64,000 bases of DNA from NCBI RefSeq assembly GCF_947568905.1, contig NC_079171.1:37262001-37326000 (forward strand), written 5' to 3'. Origin of the DNA: Ostrea edulis (lineage: Eukaryota). The notes under the pieces are model-generated. The model saw only the letters and a program-made list of their open reading frames with translations, was not told the origin of the DNA and did not search any database. The position numbers and the translations under genes are program-made. Of this stretch, positions 9,289 to 63,079 are shown piece after piece; the first letter of the stretch is position 1; every line of letters starts with the position of its first letter.

Positions 9289-9319
<31 letters not shown>

Positions 9320-26814: not shown

Positions 26815-27556
26815 GATGTATCTTCCTTAAATGAATAAGTTATGCATATTTCATGTACTAGTCTCTCTTTATCTTCAAAGTAATTGTACAATATTGCTAT
26901 TAATTTTCACACAGTGTTTAACATGTTTGTTGAAATATTGAAGTTGCATGTAACATCCTGTTTATATGATAATATATGTCCAAAAAGAGCCAATAAAAAA
27001 AAAGTATCTCATTTTGTGCCAGAATCAATGTTCACGAGTTTCATATTAACTCTTCTCATTTTCATCGATTTTTCTTCAAAAATAAGGCATTACACTTCAT
27101 AAAAAAATTCATTCATTTGAAATTTTGGTATGAATAAAGTAGTTTGTAAATGTTAACATCGTTCCCGATGATTATAGCAATTGCATTTCTTTTAATTCTT
27201 TCATATGTGAAGATAAATGATAAATCCCGGTTTTCGGTGATTTTTTTTAATATCAAAATGTACGATTTTGCCCTCAAAATACACGTTTCCCCTTTGTTTT
27301 GTGCTCTCGATTTTTTTTATATACGCTAGAGGATCCCTTGACTCACCGTTTGAAAACAAAAAAACATTTCTGTTGCAAATAGTTTGAGGTTACGCTATAT
27401 TTTTGGCTAGAATGACTAGACTATAACTAAGGTTTGTTACAACACGTGCATGTAAATGTGGTCTTGGGTATACTTACCGCAAAATGTAAGAGATTTTAAA
27501 AAGCGTTGGTGAACAGTGTCAAGCAATGCGTTCTTTTTTGCAGATCACCAACACAA

Positions 27557-39357: not shown

Positions 39358-39360
<3 letters not shown>

Positions 39361-39417
<57 letters not shown>
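39361..39417. repeat. (TA)n microsatellite
   Basis: Direct reading. Confidence 0.95.
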
Positions 39418-39420
<3 letters not shown>

Positions 39421-39660
39421 CATTCATTTCGATATTTGGGTGATCAATGAGATAGATCTGCTTACATTGATAATAATTTCAAATAATTATAAATGGGGAG
39501 GGAGAGGATGATTATTTGGTATATCAATGCCTCATACATATCCCTCCATATATATTATTAATTCTACCATGTCTTTTGTTCGGACCTGTCAAAATCTTTA
39601 AAAAAAACTTTAATTAAGATTCCCCGTTTTTATTGACAGTAAACTGGTCGTGTGATCCCG

Positions 39661-41350
39661 ACATCAGAAATGCATCCCCGGCACAGTGCGCAGGAAGTCC
39701 TATTGTGTGACCTCTGTGAAACTGTCCCCCTACAGAGTCATTGTGAAATATGTAACATAAACCTCTGTGTTAACAGCATGGGGAAACACATCTCGGATTT
39801 GTCTAAACGACACAATGTGGTGCACTATTTACACAGAAAGTGTACTCCTAACTACCCGAAATGTCCGAAACACACCGAAAAACGCTGTGAACTTCACTGC
39901 GAGAAATGTGAAATTCCTATCTGTTCTGCCTGCGTCTCCTCTGATGAACATGAAGGTCACAAGTTATCAGATATTCTGGAAAAACTCAGCTTTAAAACAC
40001 GAAATTTACAAAAAGATTTAGAAGAATTGGAGACCAGAATTTATCCCCAATATGAAGAAATGGTGTCCAATGTCCAAACTGAGAAAGCTGAGTTAGAAAC
40101 AAATTACGGGAAACTGAGAACAGCTGTCGACCAACAAGGAGAAGTCTGGCACCGAGAAATCACCGCCATTGTCAATCAGCGGAAATCTGATATTGAGGAG
40201 ATGAAAAATAAACATCTATCTACCCTGAATAGCAATACAGAAGAAATCACACAGAGAATTACTGAACTCAAACATATCATTTCCAACTTGAAATCAATAC
40301 TAGAATCCAATGACGTCTCCTTAACTTCTAGTTACATATCTAGTAATTCCGAGTTTAGAATATTACCGCCAAAAGTCCGAGTTACATCACCGAGTTTCTA
40401 TCCTCAGAAAATAAATAAAGATCAGCTTAATGAAATGTTTGGTTCTCTGTCGCCATTATATATTAACACAAAAGAACAAGGTTACCAAAATGAAGTCACC
40501 AGAAGCTATGTCATCTCCTCCAGTCAAACCACTACTTGATAAACCGCGACTCGCCGCCACCATAGACACTGATTATTCACCACTCAGTGTTAGCTGCCTC
40601 AGTGATGAACAAGTCTGGACATGTGGCAAGAATAACGAAACCATGAAGCTCTTAAACCTCCAGGGTAAATTACTAACATCTATACAAACCGAGTCGGACA
40701 ATGCACCACAAGACATAACAGTCACACGTGACGGAGATCTTGTTTATACTGACACTACTAAAAGAACTGTTAACCTAGTGAAAAATAAACAAATACAGAA
40801 CGTGATCTCACTACAGGAGTGGACACCTTGCTTTGTCTGCAGTACCGCCTCTGATGATCTCCTGGTTATCATGGACAGCACCGATGAAACACAATCCAAA
40901 GTTGTGCGTTACTCTGGCTCCACAGATACACAGACCATTCAGTTTGATGATCAGGGTCGTCCTCTATATTCATCTGATTATAACTATAAATACATCTGTG
41001 AGAACAGGAACCTGGATATTTGTGTGGCTGACTATGCAGCTAGAGCAGTAGTTGTGATCAACCAGTCAGGAAATTTCCGATTTAGATACACTGGTCATCC
41101 CTCTAATACCAAGGAATCATTCTATCCAATTGGCATCACTACAGACAGCCAGGGTCATATCATGACAGCAGACTTTAACAATGGCTGTATCCACATCCTA
41201 GATCAGGACGGACAGTTCCTCCGTTACATTCAGAACTGTGATTTATACGGTCCATTCGGTTTATGTGTGGACATCAGAGACAACCTTTTTGTGGCTGAGT
41301 TATATACTGCTAAAGTAAAGAAAATCCAATATCTATCAACACATTGTTAG
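39661..41350 (+). pseudogene. B-box/coiled-coil/NHL TRIM-like gene (copy 2), split by one frameshift
   Basis: B-boxes CDLC..CEIC..LC and CPKH..CELHCEKC..ICSAC..H.GH, coiled coil, then the NHL beta-propeller. One extra A in caaaatg (40486-40492) relative to copy 1. Could be an assembly error, although B-box1 also has Cys changed to Ser at 39775-39777. Confidence 0.8.
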
Positions 41351-41857
41351 TTACACTGTGTTACACCTACCCACACAGTGTTGATTACATATGATAAATA
41401 TGCGCGAAGTGTTATTTACAGCAGTGTGTTGATTACAACCACTGGTTAATTACAGCTGTGTGTTAATTACAGTCCGGTGTTTGTGATTTGTAATGAACAT
41501 GTTCTTGTGTTTGTGTGTTTAACTGATTGAACATTAGTTGAACATTAGTTTCTCACTATTGTTTTATAATTTTAGTGGAACTAATTTTAACATACTTATT
41601 ACTAATTTCACCATGTTACTACATGTAGTTATTCATCTATTCCATTTTCAATCTTTCCAACAAATATGCATCGCTGAACACAATTTAATGAATGTAGATC
41701 AGCTATTGTGAAGTACCTAGGGATTTCACTTTTGTGTGTAGTCTTGAATTATAGTACATCCACTACTGAGTACTAACATGTATGTGTATACTTGTCTTAG
41801 AGTGCTAAACTACTAATCGATCATTAGTCTGTTAATCATATATTCCAATATGTTTAA

Positions 41858-43557
41858 AGGAAACGTAGGGTATAAAAAAATAATTTCACATTTCAAGTAC
41901 TAAATATTTAGTAATTAAGTCCATTGGTTATTTCCATTTGATTGTAATCTGTTGTGTAGAAATCGGCTATTAGATATAGCTACACATCATCTGCTGGAGG
42001 CTGCCATTTTGCAAGATAAAGTTATCGGTCTTTAAGATATTTCCCACAATCCCATCTGCTTATGACGTATACCGGGCAATTTCCTCTCAGTGAAAGGAGC
42101 TGATCATGTCTGACTGCAAATGATATCAATATGAGCCTGATTATAATGAAGAGGAATTATTAGCAGCTTCAAATGAAAACACCAGTGAATTGGGATGGAT
42201 TGATGAAAACGACGCTCTTAATTCTTAAACTTTTAATTTTGTATTCTTTATACAGTTCATTATCTTCACTTCTTCATTCTTCACTTGAACATTTCTTAGC
42301 ACATATGATGGACAATGACTGGGCAATTCTATCTGTATATGTTGCACAAAGTTGATTTATTCTTCAATATGGATTGAGAGTGGGATATTTTTGCCACTAT
42401 TCATGTCTTCATTGAGCTGAAAATATAAAAATGAAATCAAACCATTACTTTATAACTTAAATAATGAAATTTCATGAAAACGCATGTACATGTATTTCAC
42501 ACAACAAAGAGTTTATTTTTCATAGTAGTTTTCTCTCTTCCTGATTTATTAGTACATCTGTTTACAAGAGAATATTGCAATGTGAACCTGTATACAGCAC
42601 AAATCAGTTGATTATCACTACACCCCTGCACTAATTACCACGTAAATGTCAAGACTTCAAAGATTAACTGCAAAGGGGGAATTCAAATGACCTTGGTTGT
42701 AAAACTTTGTTAATCTTTTAGAGAAATGCATCAAATTACCTGTTTCCTAAGATGCTGATAGTCCAGGTTGGTCAATAGGTTTTGCATATGAGTTTTTCAT
42801 TCGTTTCCAAAAGAAAATGGATTAGCTGAAAAATGAAAAATATTCATAATGACTAATTAATTATTTATATAAACTATACTTCAAATATACTATACTTCAT
42901 TTGTTTACTTGTACATTTTCAATTTCTTTAAAAAACAATAGTATAGGCCGGGGCTAATACAAAATGTGCTAGTGCAGGGGATGATTTTTGAAAGTATTAC
43001 ATGGATCCCGCTTTTCCTTTTCTTCATCTTTTTGAGCTATTTTCTCTTATTTCCTTAGGCTTCCTGCCATCAAATATTTTAGTTACTGCATGCATCTTCT
43101 TTTTAATAGGTTTTAATGTGTATCTCAATATCTTAATTTAATTAGATATTAAATTAACTTTGAATATTTCATATTTAGCTTGTACAAAATGTTCACTGGA
43201 TAAGGATATTAAAATAAACTGAATTAGATTAGATTAGAAAATTATTGCATAAGTAAAAGTTTGTTGTAAATAAACTCTGGTTATTTACACATTAAGAATT
43301 ATTAGTATTTACCAAGTAAAAAGCAAATATAATTTATACTTACCCTGATATCCTCATTCAAAGAATCTTTCTCAAAATGCCGTTCAAAACATTCATTCCC
43401 AAGGTTATGTATCCGAATTCTTGCACAATGTTCATAGTTTTTGGGGAGATCAGGGATGCTAAAAGGTAGATACATGTATTCCTTTTCCTTTGACCACGGT
43501 GCCAAATTTCGATTGAACTTCCGACATTTAAATTATAGATATTCTGTAACCCATTTA

Positions 43558-43600
<43 letters not shown>

Positions 43601-43860
43601 CCGATGTGTGAGGGCCTGTCCCGAGACACAGATTATTCTAACTAACCCATTTAGTGCTATAGGCACAGCAGTTGCAATTAATTGCCGCATACACGTCATC
43701 AGCCGCCATGATGAGATTCTCCCATTCAGCTCAGTTTTCAGTGTAAATGACAGATTAAATCTTGTTTTCAACAGCAATTATTTTTTCTATGCTTGATTTT
43801 GTTGTCTGCATGGTACCAGTTTTCACATATCAAAATTTGATTTTTGACCCTACGTTCCCT
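41858..43860. mobile_element. Second non-autonomous Kolobok-type element, present only in duplication copy 2
   Basis: TTAA at 41854-41857 and 43861-43864; TIR aggaaacgtagggt / accctacgttccct. A single TTAA marks the empty site near 10226-10232. YQYEPDYNEEELL on + near 42125 and a THAP-like remnant on - (about 43320-43705). Confidence 0.8.
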
Positions 43861-46723
43861 TTAATTCTAAATGTATATATAAATAGATAAACATGATTTA
43901 GAGTACAGTTTTACTTTATTACTGAGTACTTACTTAGATATATAGTATCATAAAAGAGAGTGACCCCAAACGTCCAGTTTGACCACTTTGATCGAGGCTT
44001 CCTTCCAAATAACAAACAAGAATTATTTAAACAACCAAAAATTGATTTTGAAAAAAACAAACAAAGAGAGGTAATTGATAAAGAAAAACTGCACAACCAC
44101 TCGCACATCAATCACACGACTAGCAAAAAGATTAATGTTCAAAATAATAGGAAAACAGTGCCTATTATATATGCATAAATATGTTCTACAGCCTCACATC
44201 TGTATACCTAAGACAAAGTAAATGAATAGTCATGCAGAGCAGGAAGGCATCTACCGAAGTTTCATGATCACCGCTGTGAAGATTGTCTCCAGGGTGGGGT
44301 CAAAATTGGAATAAATATTGTTTATGTATAAAGTATTTAAATAACATCTCCTTTACTGCTATACTGCGTCTCTATATGAGTGAAAAATTCTCGAGCGGGA
44401 CGTTCAACAAGATACAACCAATCAATCAATACTGCTATGCTGTGGGAATTTCGTTGTTTAAATATTTTGCATGAAATAATTTCAGTTCAGTTAAAAATTA
44501 TTTGAATAAAAAGAATTGTTTAAACAGGTCTGAATGTTGTATTAGACTCAAGGCTTTTATAAGTGTGATCTTCATTCCCGCCAAATGTCAGTATTCAAAA
44601 CAGATTAATAGGGGTGGGGACAAGACTAGGCTTTCATGATGTGCCAAAAATCGAGAGCATGCTTTATTTCCAGTATTCGTGTTTATTACAAATGAAGACC
44701 AAATATGTACGTATTGGATACAATGAATATATACAAAAATCAACGGGGTTCGAAATGACTGCTACCTAACATGGCTACGCCAACAAACGAATTAATTTGA
44801 AGTTTTAATAAATGTTTACACAGAAGTATATGCTAGTAATCTTTTGATATTTTAAGATGACGATGCAAGAATGCAGCGATTTGAGGCTTCAAATCTGAGC
44901 AGATTTTTCTGCGTCGTAAATCGAAAGTTTCGATATGGGCTATAGATCTGTAGCTCTCTGGTCTGTAAATATAATTCTAAATTGTCCGTACGTGTAGCAG
45001 GCGTTGTGTCCTTCCCGATTGTGTTTGTGAATGAATGAAGCTGAATAAAAGCTTTATGGATTTTTATGATAAAAGAAAATGCAAAACTCCTGCATAATTA
45101 CTTGCATTCGATTTATCATGATGCAGTGACCTTTTGTAAGGTTTAAACCTGAATCAAGGTATCTGTGTGAGTTAAAATTTTACACCTAGGTATATGCATG
45201 CAAAAATGACATGAATTAATATCTAATAACCTTGTATTTTTATTTTAATAATTGTTTGATATATGTAAAAAGTTCAGATGGTTTGAAACTTAACAGGCTT
45301 ACCGTAATATATAAACACCGAGAAATGAATAATACATATATTTCATGCTATCGTGCTTCCGTACAATACGCAGGTTTTTGGGAGTTGATTTTATCAACTT
45401 CTCTAATACTATGCAATAACTCGGCTCAAAGTGGTGTGAACCTGAGTACTTCTTTACAAACATATGTAATGTTCAGCGCTTGCAGCAAATAGTTCGTAAA
45501 CCGTTTACGTATTACACGTTTAAATGCACAATTTCTGTAAAAGTTACTTTTCTACCGTCGATCAATTGAGTATGTTAATTGAAAACAATATAAATATCAC
45601 TAGAAATGAAATCTAATGTCAACAGCGATATTTCCCAAAATTAAAAAAATCCTACATGCAGACTATCAGTGATCATACTTTACAACAGGTTAAACACACG
45701 TGCCTTGCGAACTGAAAGTGGGCCTACACAAAAGTCGGTGTCTTTGAAAATGCGGTTTCTGCGTATTCTATAGCAATTGAGTGGACCTTTCAAATTCAAA
45801 GATACATATCCATGTTTACACACGTGTCCACAATCGGAAAAGCAAACGACAGTAACTGATCAAATTAAAGCTAACCAAAAATAGCGTGAATCGACATATT
45901 CAATGCTAAAGTTTGAAGAATTGAATGTCTATGGAAAACCCCCCAAATATTTTGTTGTTTTCAAGAAAAAATGTCGTAAATATGAAAATCAAACAACACG
46001 CCATATAATTTCAGGGTTTTTTTAAATACACATTTCCCCATATGCATGGACCGCGACCAAGTTCTTAAAGAAAAAACGTCAACTGATTGAAATATAGAGC
46101 ACGTATGTTACGGCACGTTTGGTGGCCTCGGCACGTTCAGTCGCCGACGACCAGTTGTGCCGCACGTATCGTCGCCGGGCGACCGAATGTGCCGTGAGGG
46201 TGGACACGGATGGTCGTCAATTTTAGGCCATACCCGAGCACGAATGATTGCCACCCAAGCTCACAGTCCGAAACCCCAACTTTGTTTTTATCTTCCCTCT
46301 CCTCCAACACATATTCTCCTTCCTTCTCTTTATCCCATCTAATCCTCCTCCCTCTTCTCCACATTCTTCTTTTTGTTCTGGTTTGATCAAATCGAACAAC
46401 AAGTCTTTTGAAATGATGGCTAAAATCTAAGGGAGATGTTGCGCTTTCTGGTAGTCTTCTATGAGTAATCAGATGTCATTGGACGTCCCCTACAAAATTC
46501 ACAGCATATTCTATTCCGATTCGAAACATCCCTTCAAGCCTTTGGTACGTTTTGCGTGTGCAGAGGAGAGGCTAATTTTGCATTTCATAAAGGTGGCGTA
46601 AAAGTGTAAAACCAGAAGCGGAGAGAGTGCACAAAAACAACATGGATATACCCACAAAACTGTAGTATTCCTCTATAGACGCCTACTCTTCAACATGTCA
46701 GAGATATCCCCGCGCTGCCCTTA

Positions 46724-46900
46724 NNNNNNNNNNNNNNNNNNNNNNNNNNNNNNNNNNNNNNNNNNNNNNNNNNNNNNNNNNNNNNNNNNNNNNNNNNNNN
46801 NNNNNNNNNNNNNNNNNNNNNNNNNNNNNNNNNNNNNNNNNNNNNNNNNNNNNNNNNNNNNNNNNNNNNNNNNNNNNNNNNNNNNNNNNNNNNNNNNNNN
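46724..46900. other. Assembly gap (177 N)
   Basis: Run of N at the position homologous to 14175-14336. Confidence 1.
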
Positions 46901-49238
46901 TACCTTATAAGATAATGGCTCCATTTTGAAAGAGCAGCATTCATATATAAAAAGTGCTTAATTCAGACCTATGAATTTGCAAATTGCTTACTCCACCTTT
47001 TCAATTTGATGTATACTTTGTGAAATATCCGATTTTGCAGGCTTTTTGGTACATCTTACTTTCAGGCTTATCGCTAGTGCAATAGTTGGCCTAAAATATC
47101 TTTTAAAATTTTGTTGAGCATAGTACTTAAGGTTCTTTTTTTTTTTTTTTTTTTTTTTTTACATGAAGTCAATATACTAAGTAGTAAATATCTGTTCATA
47201 AATATTATGTTAATTAGAATTAGAATTATGTTCACCGTGTTGTTTATGCCGAATCTAAAGATTTCATTTTCTTATCAAACCATATATTGTAGTACTTGCT
47301 TTGTATTTCACTTTGTGTGCTATGTGTATTTGTACCCTCATACTTATCAGGATGTATTGCACGTCATATTTATATTCATTCCGCTTTAAAGATATCTTAT
47401 ATAATTTATGAAATATTTTCTATTTTATTTTATTAAGATGTCTCATAATTTACAGTTTATAAGATGAAAGGTGAAGATAACGAACAATGATCAATCTCAC
47501 AACTCCTATAAGCAATACAAAATAGATAGTTGGTCAAACACGGACCCCTGGATATACCAGAGATAGGATCAGCTGCCCAGGACGAATAAGCATCCCCCGT
47601 CGACCGGTCAAACCCGCCGTGGACCCTATATCTTGATCAGGTAAACAGAATTATCCAAAGTCAAAATCAGTGTGCCAAGAACGGCCAAACAATCGGCATG
47701 AACCACGTCAGACAGCATAGATTGGAAAAGTGAAATACAATCCAGACAGCTGTTAACTTACCAGTGTCTATATGTATGTAGGCATAAACAATTACACTTT
47801 GACTGTTAAAGATACAAAATAAGTTTATGAATTTGAGTGTAGTTCTATTTCTTTTAATTTTATAATAATTCTCAATCCCAGAAGTATCTGGTGCACAACT
47901 CCCATCAATACTTTTTGTACTTTGATTAAAATGTGCAGGTCAGCCGCTGACAGTAAAAGCCAGTCGTGCTCGCAAAAGGTCCATTACACGTATTCAAAGG
48001 AAGCTATTCCGGTTAAATTCGACATTTAATTAAATGTTCCGAGTCACTAAAATAATTTTCATTATTTTCTTTGTTATTTACTTTCGTTGTTATTCGTGTT
48101 ACCAAAATAAAGCACACCCATAACAGAAGTTGTTAAAACGTCCTCTGGATCACACTTGTTAACATAATCAGGTATAGTTTCTACTGGTATTGTACTGTGT
48201 TTCACAAATTACTTTTATAGAATAGCTACAATATGTAGATGGATGAAAGTTTTGAGTTATATGTATTTAGAAAGGAATGACAACAACAACGTTTAAGAGA
48301 CAAGTCAGATCACACAGTAATTTCCGCCATATTGAGATCCTTGTTTGAGAGCAATACGAATATGAGTCATGTGTTGAGTCTTATTATTTCAACTATGCAT
48401 TGGTTCCGTTTTCATGTTTTTATGATGACAGCATTACATTGCGTAGTATGAAAAGAGGGTGAGAGACGTTTAAGATTTTTAACAACTTGCAGATGAAATT
48501 GATAGTGGTTTATTAAATAATCACCGGAATATGATGTCCATCTCGGTGTCAAGCATGTAAATATTTGAATTTGAATCTGAAAGCGCAAAAGAGCTTTTTG
48601 ATAGCCTTATGTATTCCGTCTGTCTGAGCGTATTTCTATTCGTAAAACCCCGTGGGGATACGAGTTAGAATAAGTCCTCAGTACCTATTGCTTGTCATTC
48701 TCTGACCAGAGGGTGCGTTGCGCAAGCTTCACATACTCCTCTGTCAACGGCTTGGAATCACGTGACAATATAATCACATGATATAAAGTATCATTCTCGG
48801 TTTCCTTTCCCTTTAAAAGTTCTGGCAACAAGTGATACATCAGGCTTTTTCATAACCCACTGACACTTTAATAAGTACTTATTTACCATTTACCTATTCG
48901 TCTCTTATTTCACAAGTTTTATCGTATTTTTGCAGCATTTCTTCCTTTTGATTCCATGTTTACATTTAAATGTCCACCACGTGTATGTCTTACATTCATA
49001 CGCATATTACGAAGTAGTCCAAATTCATGATCAGAAAACGACGATTTTAAACAAATTACAGTAAACATCAATTTAATTGGCGGATCGCCGAATTTTTGAG
49101 TGAAAGGAGCATTAGCCAATCAGAGAACCCCATTTACACGCGCTTTCTGAAGATAAGGACGCGCCGCCATTTTGCCCGACAACAAGGAAAAGTCATCATT
49201 TTATCGGATTGTTTACATTGGTTTATGACAACGCAATT

Positions 49239-50645
49239 ATGGTGAAACGTTGCTGTTGGGGCACTTGTAACACTGATAGCAGTTATTCAGATCGGCTTCA
49301 AGGAGGGATAGTGTTCATTCCTTTTCCAAAACCTGGAAGAAACTTGGAAAAAGCCAAGAGGTGGATATGTTTGTATGGTCGTCACCATTATCAGTTAAAT
49401 GAAGATATACTCAAAAAGAGAGGGAAAGCGAAGCATTTATACGTGTGTTCAAAGGTAATATGCTCACCGATACTTGTAACGCTCATTAAAATATCATTAA
49501 ACTCGTAAATAGAAAGTACAAAGGGGACATAGCTGCAGATCTGGTATCCATGCAGGTAAAGTGCTACATGTAGGTGATATGAAATGCAAATGAATACGGA
49601 GGTATATCAAAATATTGGTGATTATGTTATATAATCAAAACTCCTTTATGGAAATCCATGCAGTTAAATACGACCTGATCTGATGACTACATATAGCATG
49701 GAAGGATTCAGGATTTTAACAGGGGGATAAAAATTTTGGCAAAATAACCATTCTATTGGTATTCATTTTGTTTTTATTTTAAGCTTCTGTCATGTATAAG
49801 CTTAATTTTTGTGAAACCTTTTAAACATCTTAGACAGTAGAATTTGATCACTAAAACTTGAAAAATCAAATTATGAGGAAAATCTGGAATCAGTCCCTTT
49901 ACTGTACATGTACACAATCACTGTGACAGTAGATTCAGGTCTTCTATAATCATGTAACACGGATACTGAAACATGTACATACATATTCTACAACAATGCC
50001 AACCAGAATTTTTTTTAGCAAATTGCACTACATATGCACATACCTTTATTTAATGCATAATGTCCGACTGCTTTCTTGATTTCATTATATTGTTTAGTAA
50101 TCATTTTTGTTATTATAAAATTGGATGGTTTAATTGTTACAATATTTAAAAGATAAATTTGATGTTCTTAATGTGTTCCTTTTTTCAATTATTAGCATTT
50201 TGTCAATGGCCAGCCATCTGAGATGCATCGTGATCCAGTGTCTGCAGTCAGTTATGATGCAGTGACACCAGCTCGAAAACCACCCACCAAAAGAGGGTCA
50301 AGTTCAGAAACGAGAACTACATCTAAGCGACATATTTTGATGGACACTAGTACTGATATGTAAGTTGTCTTTGGGTCTAAAACGTATGGGATTATAAGGA
50401 AAAAAATTGCAGTTTACAGGGCAAATATAGGGATTTTACAGCAGATTTATAGGAATAAATAGGGTTTTTATTAAAGAATTTGTATAAAAGTTTATTGTTT
50501 CTGCATATTATCTTTCTGGAAAAGAAACAATATTAAACATAAACAAAGACAAAATCCTTTCAGATTTCCATCCAACAGATAGGTTTTATACAATGATCAT
50601 AGTTATTTTCTTCATAACAATCTAATTAGATATCAATCTAGCATC

Positions 50646-50694
<49 letters not shown>

Positions 50695-53551
50695 ATTTTT
50701 GAAAATAGGACTGTCATTTTCTTGGATATATAGGGCTTTTTAGGAATATTTATAATGACTTGTAGGGAAAATATAAGAACCTTTTGAGTTTACTTATAGG
50801 AATAAATAGGGACTTGACACCCTGAATTATAACTATATATATAGTATTGCATGATACATTTGCAAGATAAAGCATTTTGAAGTAAATATCCTCACATTTA
50901 AAAAAAATGGCAATGCATGTACAGTGTACTATATTTAAGCAAAACCTTTACCCAGTCTGACAAAAATTTCATCTTTAAGAAAATATTTGTAAGGAATGTG
51001 TTTCTTTGTAATCCATATCAAAGGAATCAACACAACGAAGCTGGTAGTGATGTGTTAAAGGCATCATCTGAAATTCAACATGTTTCAACGACTGCACCTA
51101 CAAGTTCTCAAGCATCAGCAACAAAAAATGTTAACCAAATTCTTCCTGGTAATTATGTTCTATGATTCAATATAAAGGAGCAGTATTTTCAAATGACATG
51201 ATATCTATGCACCAAAATAAAAAATATACTCTACTGAAAGTGTAAAAAGAACTTTAGTCAACTGAATTTGAATTATTAGTACATTTATATACAAATTTAA
51301 GTGTTTGACAGCAAACAGAATTTCATCTCCAAGACTCTCTACATATATCTACCATACAAAGATATTAATGACCTGTAAACAAATCTTTCTGTCACACTGA
51401 GTCAGTGTTTATTTATTTCCTTCTTGTCATGAGGGGAGGAGGCTTATTATGTCTGGTACAAACACATTCTTGTTTTCATAGTTGGTGTGGTAAATCGACA
51501 TCATACATGTAGATCAGAATCATATTTGTGGATAAATGGCTCAAAATGTTGGACATAAAACTTAGCTAGTTTCTGAACTAAGACATCCATAGTAGACTTG
51601 TTTGGATAAACTCCTTCTACATATAAGTCTTGTTTGGTATATGTAATGAAGTCACAAAATGGAGCTCCGGTGACTAGAAGCTGTCCTTGGACTTGATACC
51701 AGTGGGAATGCTCATGTTTTAAGCTGAAAGTGTCACCATTTCTTTGGAGGAAGAAATAATTTCTTGTTTCACATGCTTCACTGATGGTCTTGTCTCTGAC
51801 AGAGTAAGGATATTTAATTTCAATCAAGCCACTTTCCGACTTATCACACTGTGCCATCAGGAGTTGCACCTAGAAATGGTAGTTCTGTGTTTACAATCAA
51901 ACCTATATCATGAAGGTGGTGTCCCGTTTTCTTAATGTATATTTGGTTGGCAATGTGTTCATTCGCTTTACCATGTGATGTAGCAGAAGATGTGAAATCA
52001 TTCTTTTGAAATGTGTTCTTTAAACATTTCTGGTTTACGTCTTTCAGACTTTGAGATCTTGTTGCTTTTTCCAAATTAATTACATCACTCTGTGTCAAAT
52101 TCAGCTCAGTCCATTCATATGTAAGGTTTTGAATGCATTCAAGGTCAATGCAGGTATGAGGGGCTTTTGGGAACACAGTACTTCCACAGTTTTCTGCTGC
52201 ACGGGGTTTTGTAATAGGTAAAATCAATGGTGCCTGAAATTATGCGATAATAAATACATTGCGATAATAAATACATTGCAATGATATACATGCCATACAA
52301 TGTTGAAGGTTATGTTTAGGATCTCCAATGAGTTGTGATCGGATTTGACTTTCATGGAAAAAGTGTGTTTTCTATCGGGATCCATGTTGAGTTGTATATA
52401 AATCATGTCTAATGAAAAACAATTCAAGATTCTTTTTATCATATATGTTTTACATTATTGTACTAACCATGAATACTAAAAAAAGACAAGAAATAATATT
52501 AAATTTTCCAAATATATTGCAGGTTGTAATCCACTTGAAACACTGGCCATTATTGCTGACAATACTGCATTAACTGAAGAGAAGGAAAAACTGCTCCGAA
52601 TTAATTTTGAGCTGAAACAACAAAATTCAGGACGATTTGGATATAAAAAACTGAAGGACATTGATTATCAGTATTATACGAGGTTTTCTAAAGACCGGTT
52701 CAATGTTTTATACTCACTTTTAGTACCAACAGAAGAAGATCCTATTATATGGAGTAAAACTCTTAAAGGTTCAAAATCGTTGTCAACAAAGGATCAGCTC
52801 TTGCTTGTTTTGATAAAACTGAGACAAAACTTTGACTTTAAACATATTTCATATTTGTTTGATATATATGTGCAAGACTGCAGTGCAATATTCACCCACT
52901 GGATTAATTTCATGTTTTTCAGACTAGGTAGTGTAGATATATGGCCTCATCGTTGAAAACATGCCTGAAAATTATAAGAAAGATTTTCCAGGCACTTTCA
53001 TCATTATTGACTATACGGAGTTAAAAGTACAAAAGCCCAGTTCTCTCAATCGACAGAGTCAATGTTATTCTGACTATAAGTCATGCACAACTTTGAAAGG
53101 ACTTGTGGGCATAGATCCAAGGGGCTCTGTAATATTTTCTTCCATGTTATTCTCTGGATCAGTATCTGGTAAAGTTATTACACAGGAGTGTGGCTTCCTT
53201 AAAGTATTGTCAGACTTTAAACAATGTGGGAAATTACAAAATGGTGATGGAGTTATGGTGGACAAAGGGTTTAATATTGAAAAGGAAATCGAAGCTATTG
53301 GTCTTCGGCTAAACATTCCACCTTTTGCGTCATGTGCAACACAGACGAAAGCTGCAGGGGTAACAGAAACTGTCAAAATAGCCAAACATCGTGTGCATGT
53401 TGAACGGGCTATTGCTCGTATAAAACAGTTCAAAATACGGTCAGGCAAAATGAGTCTTTCTCGTTTTAGTATTGTTGATCAGTTATGGTTAACTTGTTGT
53501 GTATTGACCAATTGTATGCCATATTTTATTCAAGATAATGAAAACTGTTAA
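49239..53551 (+). pseudogene. THAP-HTH-DDE (DDE_Tnp_4-like) transposase, 4 exons
   Basis: Exons 49239-49454, 50196-50359, 51024-51148 and 52523-53551, all GT-AG, with intron phases 0, 2 and 1 consistent. THAP CCWGTC..FP..W..VCSK|HF; DQLLLVLIKLRQN; IIDYTE; MVDKGF; RVHVERAI. Frameshift near 52950. Confidence 0.85.
50648..50691. repeat. (CT)n microsatellite
   Basis: Direct reading. Confidence 0.95.
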
Positions 53552-53820
53552 ACTTCATTCACTAATTTTTGTTGTTGTAAATTTTCATAATATCAACGAG
53601 GTTTTCCTACAAATGGATTTTTTTAAATGAATCGATTGCATATGAAAAATGTAATAATCTTTGATATTTACTGTATAATGCTACACCAAAGAAATTTGAT
53701 ATGGATGAAAAGTGGAAGATATGTGCAACAATATTTTGAAATTGAAAACTTTAAAATTTACTTCATTTAGTCACAATATGCAGTTTTAGTAGAAAGCAAT
53801 CTGACAAAAAAAATTTAAAA

Positions 53821-53888
53821 CCTCTGCTGGACTCGAACCCTTGATCTACAGATCAACACTCGGTATGCTAAGCTACTCAGCTAGGCGA
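53821..53888 (-). other. tRNA-like sequence (pseudo-tRNA or SINE head)
   Basis: Reverse complement gcctagctgagtagcttagc ... ggttcgagtccagcagagg has A- and B-box-like motifs; a clean cloverleaf could not be built. Confidence 0.5.
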
Positions 53889-54326
53889 TGATGTTTGAAA
53901 TGAAAAGACAAATATTACTGATATTCATATTTCATTCCATGTTTTAAAAGGAAGTCAGTCATTATGATACTGTGGAGTACCTCCTTAAAAAGTTTAATTC
54001 GTATATTTTGTCTGAATAAAGTTTGTAACTTACATGATACCTGAAAGGAGATCCTATGCAATGAGCACCGAATAGAGTGTTGATCCTGGATACCAGATAG
54101 GAAATTGGGGCTTGTTTAAACTTTTTCAGGATTTCCATATCCATTTCACCGATTTCAGTTTTCCTGAAAATTGTAGAAAAATAATTTTGAATGACCATTT
54201 AAAAGAACTTTATGTTGTAACAAGTGTTCTGTGCCAAACACTTGGGCGGGACTTGGCAGCAGTGTGGTTTGAAGTCTTTTAGCTGAGACCTAATTACCAC
54301 ACCTGTAAAAACGTGTTAGAGGCCAG

Positions 54327-54532
54327 GGGCCCGTTTTACAAAACAACTTGCGACAAAGTCGCAAGTCTTAAATTGTATTATACAGTTATTACTTTAAATG
54401 AATGAATTAAAACTTTTCTAAGGCTAAATCTTCAATATTTTCTTTAAAAAATATTTTGCATTCGGAGTGAATGATTTACAATAAAGTTGAAAATTTTGTC
54501 GTAAGTCTGAAGTTCTTTTGTAAAACGAACCC
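54327..54532. mobile_element. MITE with CWG-type flanks, in a YqaJ intron
   Basis: cag|gggcccgttttacaaaacaactt ... aagttcttttgtaaaacgaaccc|ctg. Confidence 0.65.
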
Positions 54533-55585
54533 CTGGTGTCCCTGTATGTGCTTTACAACTAAGTGAGTCTTTTCTGCTGAAACGCCTTAATTTGGCCAAA
54601 ACATTGGCCACGTGTATATCTAATTTAAAGACTGTCTCCATGTGAGTGAAATGTAGAATGACAATCAGTCATGCAAAACAATTAGAAAACAATGAGGAGA
54701 AAAATTGATTGAAAGATGTACACTTTTTTTTACCGTGTGTCAACAAAAGAAGCCACAATTGGCTTTCTTTTTCTGTTTAGGTTTGATGGGTTGGAAATGA
54801 TCATCCGGGACACTGGTTCTGGTTGAATCTTGTCACCTCTTGGCTTATCCCACTGTTGGGGTAGGGAAGTTGATGACAGCATTGAGGGAATTTTAACAAA
54901 ACCAGAAATCTTCCACTGCTCCAGAATCATAATAACAGCTAGGACGTGTGCACATTGACCTGCCTCCCTGTAATATGTACACAACATGGAAAAAAATCCC
55001 CACACCAAATTTGCATAATATACATTTAACAAATTAACAATAGCATTATAATACTACATGTACCCCAATACAAAACTATTTCACACATATGTTTAGTATA
55101 ATTATCTAAACGGGCTTTTGAGAAAGGTGTGTACCTATATTTGGTAAAGAAATTGAATCATAGTTACACTGACCTGGAATGTGCACTCTTTAGTTAGCAA
55201 ATAACTGGAAACACAAACATTGGTAAAATGCACCGCGTTACTAAAAGGAACAAAAATACAACAAATGAAATTTGAAAAAAAAAATAAGGACAACACTGAG
55301 CAACATTAATGAAATATGACAAAACTTTTCCGAGTGAAGTTGTTTACAAACGCTCTCTATTTATGCCTGATGCACGCATGTACGTAGATCTATATGCTTC
55401 AAGAACAATAATTTAAATAAACAAAAACGTAAAATTGAAATTATAAACAAGTGAAAACTGTTTCAATAACTCAAAATAACCTTACACACACCCAGCTTTG
55501 CAACTGCAATGTGCATCATCTAATTTCTTCTTTTCAAAGTTGACATCAATGTTGATCTTGTGTGGGTCCTCTGTTTTTCTCTGAC

Positions 55586-58500
55586 TCCTTCTTCTTCTTC
55601 CATTTTGGTACATTACCGCTCTTGGCGTAAACTCGTACCGGCGCATGAGGTGCAAAGATGACTGTACAGGTGCAGGTTAAAAACAACATATTTACAGTGC
55701 AGTTAAAAACGACCGGTAGGTTTAACGTCTGATGGTGGTGTTCTGTATCTGGAACTTGAAGTTCTCCACAGATGTTGCACATACTGCTTCGGATGGTAAA
55801 GCATTCCAAATACGAATTCTATCAGGGAAGAAAGATTTCTGGTATATAAGAGTCCTTGCATACGGTACCATGAAGCTGATGTTGTTGCCTCTCAGCGAGT
55901 TGGTCGGTACCAGGATAGGTGATGAAGGTATGTCTATCAACTGGTTGACTACCTTGTACATCATTACTGCCTTAGCTTGAGCTCTGCTAGTTGTCCGGTA
56001 ATCAAAATTTACCATGCGGGCAGCTCTCCGTTGCACCATCTCCAGTTTCTGGATGTTGGCGGCAGTGTAAGGGTCCCATATTACGCTGGCGTACTCTGTG
56101 ACTGGCCGGACCAGGGTTGTATAGCAGAGTGCCTTGGTGTTACGTGGACACTGCTGTATGTTCCTCCGCAAAAAGGCAAGGGTGTTATTTGCCTTTTTTG
56201 CAACCTGATCAACATGGTGGTTCCACTTCAGGCTCTTGTGTATATGGACCCCAAGATATTTTGCTGAATCCACTACTTCGAGGGTATGACCATGGATATG
56301 GTATTGGTGGCTTATGATCTTCCTCTTGTTGGTAATGTTCTGGATCTGGCACTTCTTGGGGTGGAATTCCATGAGCCAGTCAGCCTCCCACTTTTGTAAA
56401 CTGATCAGATCCTCCTGAAGCTGGATGGCATCAGCGGAACATCTGATGTGTTTGTACAGAGCACAATCGTCAGCAAATAGTCGGACCGTTGAACCCTCTG
56501 ATACTGCCTCCGGTAGGTCATTTATGAACAGCAGAAAGAGCAACGGGCCAAGGACACTCCCCTGGGGCACGCCAGACTGGACTGGTGCATCACTGGAAGT
56601 TACCCCTTCCAGGAGTACCTACTGTGTTTGCTCACCCAGGAAGTCCCCTATCCACTGACTAATGTTGTGACGGATGCCGTAGTACTTGATCTTGTAGAGA
56701 AGGCGTCTGTGTGGAACTTTATCGAAGGCCTTCGAAAAGTTCAGCAGTATTAGATTTGTCTGGTTCCGGTTGTCGATGTTCATAGCAAGGTCTTGAATTG
56801 TAATTATGAGCTGGCTTTCACAAGATCTTCGTTTGCGGAAGCCATGCTGAGCATCATGGAGGATGTTGTGTGTATCTAGATGTCGCATGATGCTACTGCA
56901 TACTATGTGTTCCAGCATCTTACATGTTACTGAGGTGATAATTCTTTGCTTTACTCTTCTCCCCTTTTTTGAAGATCGGTACCACATTGGCTGTCTTCCA
57001 TTCCTTTGGTATTGTTCCCCGATCTAATGATGCTTGGAAGAAGAGTTGCAGCATGGGTACTATTTGTTTAACCGTCTCCTTCAGTAGTCGACATGATATC
57101 TTGCCTGGTCCAGTTGCTTTGTGTATTTGTAGGTTGGTCAAGATCTTGTAAACCCCCTCTTCTCCTACATTAATGGCAGGCATGTCTTTGTGTGGACTTA
57201 GTCCCTTGTCTGCTATTGTGTCCTCTCGTTCATCCTTGTTAAAAACAGAGGAGAACTGAGAGTTTAGAGTATCTGCCTTCTTACTGCTCTCAGACTGTGT
57301 CATTCCCTTGGTGTCCTCTAAGTGCTACTCCAGCACTGTCGGTTCTTAACAAAACTCCAGAATCTTTTTGGATTTGATGACGAATCTGGGCTGATGATGT
57401 TGGTAAAGAAAGAGTTGTACGCTGTTCTACAAGTTCTTCGTGACAGCTCTTTGAGATGTTTATGACGCTTGATGTCTTTAACATTTCCTGTTCTTCGTGC
57501 CTTCCGAAAGCTTTTCTTTTTCCTCCTCGATACTCTCTTCACTTCTTGTGTTATCCACAGCTCTGAGAATCTATTGGATGTCAATTTAGATGGTAAGTGC
57601 TGTTCTTGTATGGCCAGTAGTCGCTCTTTGATGAAAGTCCACATAGTTTCGATAGGGCTTGTGGTGTTAAATGTCGAGCAGAATTCTGTGGTTAGTGCCT
57701 CACTGTCCTTCTGTATGGCATCCATATTGGCTTTATTCCATAGGAGGATTTTGCGGGCAACTGGCTTATTCCTTCGTGTGGGCACACTGGCTGCGATCTG
57801 CACAATATCGTGATCTCCAATACCAGGGGCCGGGGAGCATTTATCCACCAAGGTTGGGCGGTTGGTAAGGAATAGATCAAGGGTGGTGTTATGTCGAGTG
57901 GGGAAACCCACCATTTGTTCGAAGCCACAGTGGTTTACACAATCCAGGAATTTCTGGTTTACTAGTACTTGATTGGAATTTCCTTCAATGCTCTGTGTGG
58001 TCCAGTTAATGTCCAGAAGGTTAAGGTCACCTCCTACCCAGAATGCTGCTTTCCGATATTTTGCTGTGATTGATTCTAGGGATGTGCACAAACGCTCCAT
58101 TTGGTCAGCCGATGAACTTGGAGGTCTGTAAAGCGCACCAGTGATCAGCCGGTTTCCCTTCTCCAAGGTAACTGAAGCATAGACCGATTTAGTATCGCTT
58201 TCTATGTTAATGCGTTCACTTATGATGTCAGTCTTCACAGCAATCAGAACTCCACCACCGAGAGCGTCCCTTCTATCCTTCCTTTATACGTTGTAGGATG
58301 AGGGAAAATCTCAGGGCTATATACGGACTCTGTCAGTTATTTTTCTGTTCCAATAATAATGTTGGGATTACAGGAATCAATGATGTTCAGTAGGTGCGGT
58401 TTTTTGTTTTTAATGCTCTGAAAGTTTATATTCAGGATGACAAATTTATTCCATGAGTGAGTGACGTTCATTGTGTCACGGTTCTTTGTAGCCTTTGGTG

Positions 58501-59065
58501 AGGAACTAGCTACGGGTGAACCAATTGAGTCATTTTCACTTTCTATGCTGCTAAATGAGGTAACTGTGTCCATATGAAGTGAATCAAAGAAACTGGAAGT
58601 AAACTGTGGCATACCACATGTTACACAATGTCATGCCACATTGTTCAAACAGTTATACATCTGCGAGTCCATATTCATACAATCCGCATGATACCATAAG
58701 TTACAATCATCGCATGCCACACCTCTTTGTTTCCATGTTACCGCCTTATGACATATTTGACAGGGGTACTTTGGAAGACGTGGACCAGGATTACTCTCTA
58801 CGTCCGACGAACACGTGAGAATGATGAAACTTAAGTATAAAAGTGTATGCATTTTAACTCGTTTGATGTTTGGGAAGACGGGTACATGTAAATACCTCAG
58901 GCCTCCGAGTCCTCTATTCGCTGCTATGCTACTGATACAATCCCTCCATAATTCACTTACAGTCTTATTTTCACTGTGTTCTGTCCTTACATTTGAAGAT
59001 CTCACTACTACAAGGATCAGAAACAGAAAGTAGAAGTTCACACTTACTGTCGTTGTTTACTTTCG
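55586..59065 (-). mobile_element. CR1/L2-group non-LTR retrotransposon (2A-like peptide, PHD, APE, RT), degenerate
   Basis: DVESNPGP; PHD C..C..C..C..WYH..C; GALYRPP, GGDLN, LDLFLT, DH (APE); FSKAFDKVPH, PQGSVLGPLLF, LFADD (RT); SFFP..IRIWNALP; (GAA)n tail near 55588-55601. Boundaries are tentative. Confidence 0.88.
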
Positions 59066-59859
59066 CTCTGACCGGAAGTTGTAAACCACATAGCAAAATT
59101 TACAAGAGGGGATAAGATCTAAATTTAGACTTAAAACACAGGTGTAGGTAAGTTCCAAGTCTGTTCCTATTGATAATAATGCAACCTGATGCGCCCCCAA
59201 CTTCATAGAAATTAGAAAATTTTAGTTTAGAGTACCGCTGAACGCGGGAAGTCGTCTTTGCACCGCACATGCGCAAAAGTTCAAAGGAAATAACTGCTAT
59301 ATACTTCGGCTTTTATTAGCATATCTTCGCGTTCTTGTGTATATAATTTGACTGATTTAACATAAGAATCCTTCATAAACACGAGAGCTCGTTGTTTTTG
59401 CCGAAGGGATGGTGTATGTAACATGTGTGATGCAGAAAAGTCGTCTTTGATGTCATTTAACGACATAATCCGCGCCATGTTGTTTATGCGTCGAATGTTG
59501 GGCTAGTTACCGTCGTCATGGTGGGTAGGGCTTACACGAAAATCGGTGATCGGCCAATTGCACCAAAATATATCATAATATGACTGAATATTTAGTTCAA
59601 AAATAAATGTTGAATAATAGAAACTTTTACAAGATTTCTGTAAAAAGCTGTTGACGGAGGTGTAGTGCGAGGAGGGCACGGGACTCTGGGTGTATCATGC
59701 TTGTTTGTAGGCAGGGTAAGACTAAATGTGGCGTCAGGTCTATGTTATGACGTATGTCACAATACGATTGTGACATAGGTGGATCATTTAGTTTTATGCA
59801 ATAAATATTTCCTTTATACAAACTATGTATACAAATGTTGATTTAGTAAATTAATATAA

Positions 59860-59957
59860 ATATAAGAAATGAACATCGGGTTTCACATAATTGGCCTCAA
59901 ATCCAGATTCGTTCATATTGACCACGATCACTCAAAAGTGATGTTCATTTCTTAAAT
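59860..59957. mobile_element. ~98-bp MITE-like element
   Basis: atataagaaatgaacatc (59860-59877) / gatgttcatttcttaaat (59940-59957), 17 of 18 bases inverted-match. Confidence 0.6.
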
Positions 59958-60009
59958 AACTTTGGAGTTTGATCCAATTTTAAGAAAACCTAACCTATTC
60001 GATATTTCC

Positions 60010-60345
60010 TGAAATATTTCCTGAATTATTTGAGGTATGGCTTTCATACTTTGTCTATGGATTCGTATTGCAAGACCTTTCATATTATAGCATGATCTAT
60101 GACCTTGACCTCAGAACAAACCTGAACTTTCTCAGAACCGTAAGGTCATGCTAGTCATATTACCTATGTTGTGTGAATTCATGTTCGAATATGTTGACGT
60201 GACCAGTTGGGGCTAGGTTAAACCCACCATATATGGTGTCAATTTTTCATGGGAATTGAAATTATTTTTAAAGAAAAAATCAAAACAGTCGTACAACAGC
60301 AAGGCCAAGCCAATTCAAGTGAGCGATGTGGCCCATGGGCATTGA
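60010..60345 (+). mobile_element. Helentron-like 3' fragment
   Basis: Ends caagtgagcgatgtggcccatgggc, a hairpin terminus typical of bivalve HINE-type repeats. Confidence 0.5.
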
Positions 60346-60702
60346 TTTTTGCATTGCTTTTGTATTACTTGACCCATGGGTGTAAAATGCAAGACCAATA
60401 TGAAAACGTATTCATTTGAGAAAATGTCGTCATAATTTTTTTCCATATAATAGCGGAAAAAAGAAACTGTGCATTATTTAATATATGAAAAAATAATAAA
60501 GAATAACAATGAACAAATTTTATTTTTGTACTACTGTTACATGTAACAAATCTATTCGTTACAACATTTCATAATCCATTAATGTTAACGTCGAATAATT
60601 CAGCACACTCGAAAGACACTGGTATTCGAATTTGAATTAACAAAGTTAATAACGCGTGTGACCATCATTTACATTAACGCACGCTTCACAACGGCGCATC
60701 AT

Positions 60703-61638
60703 TTATGCTACTAAAGTGTTCAGAAATGCTTGAGGGATGTTGTAACAGATGTTGCTTAAAGCCTGGCCTAAGTCAGCCAATGTCACTGGCTGATTTTGTA
60801 AACGGCGTAGACGTCGTTCCATTTCATCCCAGATGTGCTCGATCGGCGATAAATCGGCAAGACATCCACATTCTGTTGAACAAAAAAGTCCCTGACTACA
60901 CGTGGAACATGTGACCTTGCGTTGTCTTGCTGCAGTGATGTGATTTTGCTTTCTCTGTAGGAAGGGTATCACATGGCGCTGAATAATTTCGTCTCGATAG
61001 CGTACGCCGGTAAGATTTCCATTGACAAATTGTAGAGGGGTCCTTCCATGTACTGTTATTCCACCCCACACCATAACGTTACCTCCACCGAATTGTTGAC
61101 GCTGCACAACACAAGCGTCCTGGTACCCCTCCCCAACTCGACCATACACTCTACAACGGCCGTCACTGATATACAAATGAAATCTGGATTCATCAAATAA
61201 CAAACTATTGGCCCAGTCCTATATTCTGAATCATAGATGTCGTCTGCACCACGCTAGTCTAGCGATACCATGACGTTGAAACAGTGTTGGGCGAACCACT
61301 AAACGTCTAGGTCTGATGTTGTGCTCGCACAGACGATTACACACAGTTCTTGGACTAATTGGTCGAAGTCCAGAAATGCTACGAGCAGTCAAACTTGCTG
61401 TCTGGAAATTATTTCTCAGGTGCACAAGTCTAATGTGGTTGTCTTGTCGACTTGACGTCACACGAGGACGCCCAGAACGTGGTCGACTCCGAGTGTTACC
61501 AGATTGTTGGAAACGTCTCCATAATGACTGGATGGTGTTCTGATGAACTCCAAAGTGTCTTGCTACGATATTTTGTGCCATTCCAGCTTGAAGCATCTCA
61601 ACAGAACGATTACGTTGGTTTTAGCTGAGTCGTGACAT
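60703..61638 (-). pseudogene. Tc1-family transposase, disrupted
   Basis: ATG at 61638 followed by an early stop; HTH ARHFGVH..RSGRPRVT; FDESRF; GGGNVMVWGGI; DLSPIEHIWDEM. Frameshifts present; TIRs not resolved. Confidence 0.85.
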
Positions 61639-62173
61639 GGCAGAAAGTTAAATTTTATCAAAACTAAAGTCCAAACAAACCTTTTACACTTCTTACTCCA
61701 AACAATAGTGGCCAGTAAAACTCATGCGTACGAACATTTCAATAAACAGCATGTGTTCACTAACCATGAAAAAGTCCGTGTATCTGAGTGGGGTACTATC
61801 CGATATGGTTCAAAACCATCACCTTTATCGATTGTATAGATTTTATCAATATAAACAATAAATATAGAAAAATCATACTAAATTTTATAATGCACAGTTT
61901 CTTTTTTCCACTACTATATTGAGAGTGTTTATCTTCTGAAGGGATATCCTTGTGGTTTTGTACGAACATACATATTTGCAAGCATTCCTCATGATGAGAA
62001 TAAGCGAATCAGACACTTGGCTTGCGAATATGACGAACGGAATTAAGTTAGGTTTGTTACGACGCGTCCTTGTAGTTGTGGTCTTGGGTACACTTGTCCC
62101 AAACTGCAAAATAATTTTTTAAAAAGTTGATTAACTGTGACAAATTACTTCTTTTTGCAGATCATCAACACAA

Positions 62174-63079
62174 ATGGCAACAGCTATATCGTTTGCCCAG
62201 CACTACATTGAATGTGAAAACTGTGAGGAAAATCCAGCACAGTTCCTGTGTAAAACATGTTCAGGTCATCTGTGTGACGCATGTAAGGCAGAGCATGAAA
62301 GGCGAAAAATAACCCGGAATCACGAAGTCATACACCTGACCTCAGAGAAAGGGGATATAATGGAACGGTTGTATTGTTCAAAGCACAGAAACGAAAAGCT
62401 GAAGTGTTACTGCTCTCCCTGCCAGACTCCAGTATGTACCCACTGTCTGTTGGAAACTCATAATTGTCATGAAGTGGAAAATCTGGCTATTGTCTACAGC
62501 AGAATCCAAGACGAACTTCTAAAAGACAAGAAGGAGATAGAACTAACACTTCTGCCGAAATATAAAGAAATGTTAGCGAAGGAAACTGAAAAGGAAGCGA
62601 ATATATCAAAGCGAATTGACGAAGTGGAAAAACAAATAGAGGATCATACAGACAATATAATCAAACGATTCACAGCAATCAAAGAGAATTGGGTACAAGA
62701 CCTTCGACAAGAGAAGGAAAAGGCACAAAAGTCGGTTGCGAAATCCAAAACTGAAATCGAGAGACGAATAAAAGCATTAAACGAAATTAAAACCCAAATA
62801 TCAAACAACTTAGGTGCAAGGCCAGGGATTATATTTTTCAAAGCTACAGATGACAACAGCTTATACAAAATGCGACGATTTCCAAATGCAATTGAATACA
62901 AACTCGGTAACTTTTCTCCCGGTGACATTGATCAAATAACACGGGATATTGACTTTGGGAAAGTCCCTACATATAATATGAGGAGTTTATCACAATATGG
63001 TCTCTTGTTGTCATCTCACCATGACATATTCCAGAAAAGCAATCCCTTTTTTAGGGCATTTTTCCTAGATGAAAAGTAA
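62174..63079 (+). CDS. Two-B-box + coiled-coil protein with no RING and no NHL (copy 2, 301 aa)
   Basis: Acceptor cttctttttgcag, ATG at 62174. Uninterrupted ORF paralogous to 27557-28492. Confidence 0.8.
   Translation: MATAISFAQHYIECENCEENPAQFLCKTCSGHLCDACKAEHERRKITRNHEVIHLTSEKGDIMERLYCSKHRNEKLKCYCSPCQTPVCTHCLLETHNCHEVENLAIVYSRIQDELLKDKKEIELTLLPKYKEMLAKETEKEANISKRIDEVEKQIEDHTDNIIKRFTAIKENWVQDLRQEKEKAQKSVAKSKTEIERRIKALNEIKTQISNNLGARPGIIFFKATDDNSLYKMRRFPNAIEYKLGNFSPGDIDQITRDIDFGKVPTYNMRSLSQYGLLLSSHHDIFQKSNPFFRAFFLDEK

Follow-up and report, generated by a model that had tools for sequence, protein, structure and literature searches.

ISL2EU elements, cut-and-paste DNA transposons of the PHIS superfamily, have been described as carrying 'two ORFs' (open reading frames), one for a THAP-HTH-DDE transposase and one for a YqaJ protein, with AT target duplications and termini that begin with GG (PMC4482050, PMC4122938, PMC9179366). 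The transposase cuts and pastes the element; the role of the nuclease is unknown (PMC4482050). Here, an element of this kind was analyzed in a stretch of 64,000 nucleotides (nt) of the oyster Ostrea edulis (GCF_947568905.1, contig NC_079171.1, positions 37,262,001 to 37,326,000 of the forward strand), which is called the window below and is numbered from its first letter. The window copy is a decayed ISL2EU-type transposon that spans 49079-59555, and it very probably belongs to a large mollusc and teleost branch of ISL2EU in which the two genes face inward on opposite strands and are reciprocally interleaved, so that each ends in an exon lying inside an intron of the other.

Partial parallels to such an arrangement exist elsewhere. 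Animal genomes hold interleaved or nested pairs of host genes, in which exons of one gene occupy introns of a gene on the opposite strand, at single loci; those are host loci, unlike the present arrangement, which lies inside a mobile element and has been copied across species. The Drosophila P element encodes a THAP-domain transposase that depends on splicing, and its internally deleted copies leave THAP-only products, but it is a single-gene element with a catalytic domain of unrelated type, and its introns hold no second gene. PIF/Harbinger elements share with ISL2EU a related DDE_Tnp_4 transposase and a separately transcribed second gene that is needed in trans, but their partner is a Myb/SANT (Myb-like) DNA-binding protein and no nuclease, their target duplication is TWA, and interleaving is not reported for them (PMC4482050, PMC9179366). 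With published ISL2EU elements, the branch described here has in common a THAP-HTH-DDE transposase and a YqaJ second gene; candidate terminal inverted repeats (TIRs) that start with GG and are flanked by AATT resemble the published ends, and the published length of ~4.8 kb is like that of a compact copy in Alosa alosa (4764 bp). The published two-ORF plan, however, is matched by the loci called plain below, whereas the interleaved branch has split genes whose exons alternate on opposite strands. The annotation made at first pass from the sequence alone took this layout as one not known to have been described, which agrees with the literature: interleaving is mentioned neither in three ISL2EU papers (PMC4482050, PMC4122938, PMC9179366) nor in what further literature searches on ISL2EU and YqaJ returned, Repbase and Dfam, whose consensus annotations may show the order implicitly, lying outside their scope.

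Exons were assigned from domain matches, relatives, splice sites and four sequencing runs aligned to 49200-55199, three as contigs (X19, X20 and X1) and one as raw reads (X23). X1 and X23 are DNA of the window's own organism; X19 and X20 come from a sister species (organism B) and are called RNA-like, a label that is a guess. From left to right, the parts of the two genes and the spacer between them are:

49239..49454, plus strand: transposase exon 1 with the THAP zinc finger and the start codon, ATG at 49239 (Pfam THAP, tblastn, RNA-like joint)
50196..50359, plus strand: transposase exon 2, linker (joints 49452>50194 and 50359>51024 in X19/X20; open frame)
51024..51148, plus strand: transposase exon 3, linker (joints 50359>51024 and 51147>52522, the latter cut +1; open frame)
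51501..52233, minus strand: last exon of the YqaJ gene, exonuclease domain, inside transposase intron 3 (Pfam YqaJ; conserved acceptor)
52234..52522, no strand: central spacer between two back-to-back 3' splice sites (bridged by the X1 DNA contig 52043-52533)
52523..53551, plus strand: transposase exon 4, HTH_Tnp_4 and DDE_Tnp_4, inside the last YqaJ intron (Pfam; conserved acceptor)
54034..54163, minus strand: YqaJ gene exon 3 (tblastn to the spliced RefSeq models P0115 and P0127)
54734..54970, minus strand: YqaJ gene exon 2, encoding the second half of the SWIM-like finger, CxC...CxH (relatives' proteins, splice reading)
55492..55601, minus strand: 3' part of YqaJ gene exon 1, encoding the first half of that finger (matched by P0187, P0148 and P0137 in tblastn)
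59293..59478, minus strand: YqaJ gene exon 1, 5' part, ATG at 59478 (tblastn with P0187 residues 1-62, E 2e-08)

The assignment to ISL2EU made at first pass is supported by the joint presence of HTH and DDE_Tnp_4 domains, a THAP finger, and a YqaJ gene on the opposite strand. In the transposase gene, Pfam finds HTH_Tnp_4 (1.2e-15) and DDE_Tnp_4 (3.5e-35) in 52523-53551(+), and the translation of the DDE exon shows the D, D and E motifs as IIDYTE, VMVDKGF and HVERAI. The THAP match at 49239-49454(+) has an E of 6.4e-4, under the Pfam cut-off for the unspliced ORF; splicing of exons 1 and 2 restores the C-x2-H of the finger (CSK|HF), completing C2CH, and a THAP exon is located upstream of the YqaJ exon in seven other loci (tblastn). 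The spliced frame stays open from the ATG at 49239 through three junctions, the last of which (51148>52523, CCTG|GTAATT...TTGCAG|GT) is canonical with matching phases, and in 11 loci the DDE exon keeps its phase-1 acceptor with a pyrimidine tract and CAG. A stretch of 22 nt within exon 3 (51078-51099) is missing from the RNA-like contigs of organism B and present in all DNA reads of the window's organism; this difference would shift the frame of the expressed organism-B copy.

In the nuclease gene, the exon at 52233-51501(-) contains a YqaJ domain (6e-07, 30.3 bits against a curated Pfam cut-off of 22), with ATPDG and EIKYP motifs in its translation, and full-length relatives match both YqaJ and Viral_alk_exo in Pfam. 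The N-terminal part of other animals' spliced YqaJ proteins aligns with the exons 54163-54034, 54970-54734 and 55601-55492, the SWIM-like CxC...CxH finger being interrupted by an intron. The junction 54034>52233 (TATCAT|GTAAGT...TTTCAG|GCACCA) is canonical and in phase, as is its counterpart in the transposase gene, which bears out the first-pass reading of the splice sites on both strands. The acceptor of exon 3 reads TTTTCAG|GAAAAC and the donor of exon 1, by sequence, GG|GTGTGT. The first ~44 residues of the YqaJ exon (52233-52100, minus) form a cysteine-bearing segment with a weak Pfam match to HYR_4C (E 0.0023); this segment also matches long proteins with arrays of it, such as P0117 (1044 aa, 13 stretches).

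The YqaJ exon accordingly sits between transposase exon 3 and the DDE exon, and the DDE exon sits between the YqaJ exon and YqaJ exon 3; the final, catalytic exon of each gene is within the last intron of the other, on the opposite strand. All coordinates proposed at first pass for this arrangement hold, and domain matches, splice sites, the open frame and relatives agree that the reciprocal interleaving is real. The accompanying argument, that one inversion cannot derive the interleaved from the tail-to-tail order, also stands.

Contigs of X19 and X20 bear the joints 49452>50194 (cut +2), 50359>51024 and 51147>52522 (cut +1), all of them GT..AG; a single RNA-like contig of 1447 nt joins transposase exons 2, 3 and 4 (the last being the DDE exon), and the joint of exons 1 and 2 is on a separate contig. 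These transposase joints are absent from the DNA runs X1 and X23 over 49200-55199. Depth in X19/X20 is many-fold higher over exons than over introns, and the DNA runs are flat outside repeats. Because both the joints and this contrast in depth are confined to X19/X20, transposase intron 3, with the YqaJ exon inside it, appears to be removed in RNA. For the nuclease gene, the YqaJ exon is deeper than its flanks in X19/X20, and two contigs of these runs (821 and 768 nt) match only 54728-54974, continuing on both sides in sequence that is not that of the adjacent introns. In a 1305-nt Logan contig (SRR8489874, L091), nuclease exons 2 and 3 and the YqaJ exon follow one another directly, with no DDE exon between them, and the contig has been read as spliced RNA. 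Were the gene models wrong, and the element a row of four neighbouring ORFs (THAP, DDE, SWIM and YqaJ) with no true interleaving, such joins would not be expected of either gene. Several public annotations do make the DDE exon a gene of its own, but the joins on the RNA-like contigs, the open spliced frame with its completed THAP finger, the RefSeq models and Logan contig that connect YqaJ exons 2, 3 and 4, and the plain relatives described below, in which THAP-HTH-DDE is one ORF and SWIM-YqaJ is another, make the four-ORF account highly improbable.

The order could also be peculiar to the window copy, as the product of a local rearrangement, a nested insertion or a misassembly. The copy is heavily damaged, bears insertions of long interspersed nuclear element (LINE) sequence and others resembling short interspersed nuclear elements (SINEs) and miniature inverted-repeat transposable elements (MITEs), and belongs to a segment that only one of the two copies of a segmental duplication has, all of which would suit such an origin. 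However, a contig of the independent DNA run X1 covers 52043-52533 across the point where the two catalytic exons meet, and so their head-to-head position does not stem from misassembly; depth in the raw reads is even there. The first-pass annotation had asked that the assembly be confirmed with long reads and, among the outcomes that would overturn it, had named a plain tail-to-tail order in intact relatives. Relatives were collected by a protein search with the DDE piece, after which the window's exon translations were mapped by tblastn on the DNA around several of them. The order THAP(+), YqaJ exon(-), HTH-DDE exon(+), exon 3(-), exon 2(-), exon 1(-) was found in nine named species, seven of them molluscs (Patella caerulea, Mercenaria mercenaria, Liolophura sinensis, Argopecten irradians, Saccostrea echinata, Mytilus galloprovincialis and Pecten maximus) and two teleosts (Fundulus heteroclitus and Alosa alosa), and it recurs in many metagenome contigs; all close relatives share it, and the plain order occurs only in a separate branch, an outcome that speaks for the layout. 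In the window and nine other loci alike, YqaJ exon 3 ends in ...TAY CAT|GTRWG, the YqaJ exon starts after YAG|, and the intron between them is of phase 0, measures 1138-2144 nt and always has the DDE exon inside. RefSeq models of Mytilus and Saccostrea place a GT..AG intron at the same codon as in the window. Public annotation shows traces of the same order: in Patella, Mercenaria and Argopecten a minus-strand gene spans the DDE gene, and Pfam identifies it as YqaJ in Mercenaria and Argopecten; in Saccostrea and Pecten a THAP gene overlaps an opposite-strand YqaJ gene.

The ends of the element bear on the same question. Candidate ends of the window copy are:

49075..49091, plus strand: left end, AATT flank at 49075-49078 and candidate TIR GGCGGATCGCCGA from 49079 (17-nt inverted match)
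59543..59559, minus strand: right end, candidate TIR to 59555 and AATT flank at 59556-59559 (inverted match to the left end)

AATT-flanked TIRs occur in the same relative positions in the 4764-bp element of Alosa (L005) and in Argopecten (L007), one pair enclosing both genes in each of the three copies. The candidate ends fit those published for ISL2EU, with a GG start and an A|AT|T target (PMC4482050). With the bridging contig, the even read depth and the same order in nine named species, this single pair of ends leaves an origin of the order in the window copy alone barely credible. At both ends, less than ~100 nt from the terminal repeat and near each gene start, a CGCCAT-type motif was seen by eye (left, 49160-49175, GCCGCCATTTTG; right, 59470-59485, read inward, AACATGGCG).

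To place the layout in the family, 79 further loci were gathered from metagenome contigs with a DDE alignment, and exon classes were mapped on 88 loci in all (L001-L088). The interleaved layout is present in 25 of the 88, a recurrence in other organisms that is not due to chance. Nine more have the DDE exon followed directly by exons 3 and 2, with no room for a YqaJ exon, which is partial evidence for interleaving; 19 are plain tail-to-tail (DDE on the plus strand, then YqaJ, exon 2 and exon 1 on the minus strand), and 35 are too short to tell. Plain loci have uninterrupted ORFs, of 490-508 aa for THAP, HTH and DDE together and 457-855 aa for YqaJ, and one plain copy sits in a contig of 535 kb. 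In a maximum-likelihood tree of HTH-DDE proteins (62 rows, unrooted), one branch with support of 100/100 has all interleaved or partly interleaved rows (28/28) on one side and all plain rows (18/18) on the other. The layout thus changes once on the tree, and a quick tree of all 66 rows agrees. Inside the interleaved side, the window copy groups with Saccostrea echinata (L008) and the scaffold L002. Interleaving is therefore the standard architecture of the whole ISL2EU clade to which the window copy belongs, contrasting with a plain-layout sister set. Rooting was tried with the distant metagenome matches L076, L078 and L080 and given up, their ORFs being too degenerate and L076 standing on a branch of 1.93.

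Two observations on relatives are recorded beside the tree. The HTH-DDE protein of Alosa alosa (L005) is 69% identical to that of Mercenaria mercenaria (L003) and only 49% identical to that of Fundulus heteroclitus (L004); in the tree, the Alosa protein groups with that of Mercenaria (100/97) and the Fundulus protein is placed near the scallop's with poor support. These identities of shad and clam against killifish fit either horizontal transfer or old lineage sorting between molluscs and teleosts. In Syngnathoides biaculeatus, the RefSeq models P0148 and P0241 bear the name 'syntaxin-binding protein 1b isoform X4/X1' yet include an entire SWIM-YqaJ protein from this element family, and are probably a chimeric annotation or an exonised element.

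Several points count against the reading of the window copy as one of an old, interleaved branch with two spliced genes. Of the two junctions to be sought in reads, 51148>52523 was recovered in the RNA-like contigs, but 54034>52233 is not among the joints listed for any of the four runs over 49200-55199; support for the latter consists of a conserved GT..AG junction in 10 loci, the RefSeq models and the one Logan contig, which may itself be a processed copy. The RNA nature of X19 and X20 is a guess, and their organism differs from the window's. Most metagenome loci are of unnamed source and several are near-duplicates, so that there are fewer independent loci than the counts suggest. The 62-row tree excludes four rows whose branches are very long, and it is unrooted, so that which layout came first stays a matter of inference. 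Finally, the candidate TIRs of the window copy, which match at 15 of 17 nt, start with GG and have AATT on both sides, are short and statistically weak when taken alone. An interleaved branch shared by molluscs and teleosts nevertheless remains the very probable reading.

The exon order suggests how such an element would be expressed. The transposase gene starts by the left end with its THAP exon and the nuclease gene by the right end with its SWIM-like exons; each reads inward and ends past the centre of the element, with its catalytic exon in the last intron of its partner. The two catalytic exons stand head-to-head, each behind its own 3' splice site, across a central spacer that measures 50-575 nt in the other loci of interleaved layout. 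Each primary transcript would then cross the partner's catalytic exon in antisense and have to be spliced, and both proteins would be obtainable only from spliced RNA. A central deletion would remove both catalytic domains at once and leave both zinc-finger exons. Overlapping convergent transcription, as proposed at first pass, would likewise follow from the gene models; the further proposals made there, that the interlock hinders separation of the genes by deletion and lets the element regulate itself, are conjectural. In compact copies, the transposase stop codon lies 29-219 nt from YqaJ exon 3, and the first AATAAA or ATTAAA is found only past exon 3 in three of the seven loci checked; judged from sequence, the 3' untranslated region of the transposase transcript probably overlaps nuclease exon 3 in these copies, and the mature mRNAs may overlap as well.

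As to its origin, the layout is somewhat better explained than not as a frozen rearrangement, which would have arisen once from a plain tail-to-tail ancestor with two ORFs and would persist because no single step undoes the order without killing a gene. We infer that the plain layout is the older, since introns are a prerequisite for interleaving and the plain form fits the general two-ORF plan of the superfamily. Passing from plain to interleaved would need two neighbouring segments to be swapped without inversion, conceivably by one internal translocation, or by a duplication and two later losses; with intact copies supplying the proteins in trans, defective intermediates could perhaps have survived. 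An adaptive origin would instead have convergent transcription lead to interference or to double-stranded RNA, limiting the activity of the element or coupling the dosage of its two proteins. The layout is indeed kept within the clade across proteins with identities down to ~36-50%, and in compact copies even mature mRNAs may overlap, but such conservation is equally expected if the order cannot be reversed in one step, and relatives with the plain layout persist in several lineages too; we consider the adaptive account unlikely. Still more specific, and quite improbable, is a selected 'interlock' that arose once, through which double-stranded RNA made by the element itself would throttle it, this restraint having helped its spread among molluscs and teleosts.

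On the preferred reading, a frozen rearrangement, the clade offers a clear case of a multi-step rearrangement fixed within a mobile element, and the interleaved and plain sets form a natural paired comparison for antisense regulation of a DNA transposon. For annotators it supplies the correct gene model, where public annotations currently break the two genes up or merge them with genes of the host. The layout alone opens no major question, and the window copy is dead.

The decay of the window copy is legible in its sequence. After 52953, most other copies carry 11 nt more, so that the DDE exon of the window is frameshifted by an 11-nt deletion and its translation hits stops past ...DIWPHR; after 51844, most other copies have CA, so that the YqaJ exon is frameshifted by a 2-nt deletion. 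YqaJ exon 1, a single exon in Patella (L001), is split in the window into 59478-59293 and 55601-55492 by a LINE, whose ORFs at 55722-56570 and 57318-58238 (minus; 282 and 306 aa) have translations resembling reverse transcriptase (RT) and endonuclease. The first-pass annotation had treated the copy as intact; the two frameshifts and the interruption of exon 1 by a LINE leave it unable to work. The insertions are:

55602..59292, minus strand: LINE fragment (RT and endonuclease ORFs) in YqaJ exon 1, boundaries approximate (ORF translations; exon-1 halves on either side)
53678..53988, no strand: SINE-like insertion of high copy number, with the DDE exon to its left and YqaJ exon 3 to its right (word depth, loose ends)

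The SINE-like insertion is outside the plan of the family; its word depth reaches 53,737, against ~33 alongside, and loose ends accumulate at its borders, 53677/53678 and 53988/53989. A tRNA gene was considered for the tRNA-like stretch 53820-53890 within it and rejected: ARAGORN finds none, and read depth points to a high-copy SINE-like insert. Further short repeats of very high copy number lie in the introns of the element at 49859-49901, 50400-50599 and ~54200-54560. Self-BLAST found no other ISL2EU copy within the window, only a segmental duplication, which ends at 48599 before the element. Its parts, 6047-16068 against 37786-48599 and 27424-28363 against 62044-62980, are 82-93% identical, and the two copies of the duplication differ mid-way (16069-27423 against 48600-62043), the ISL2EU copy and its LINE lying in the segment specific to the second.

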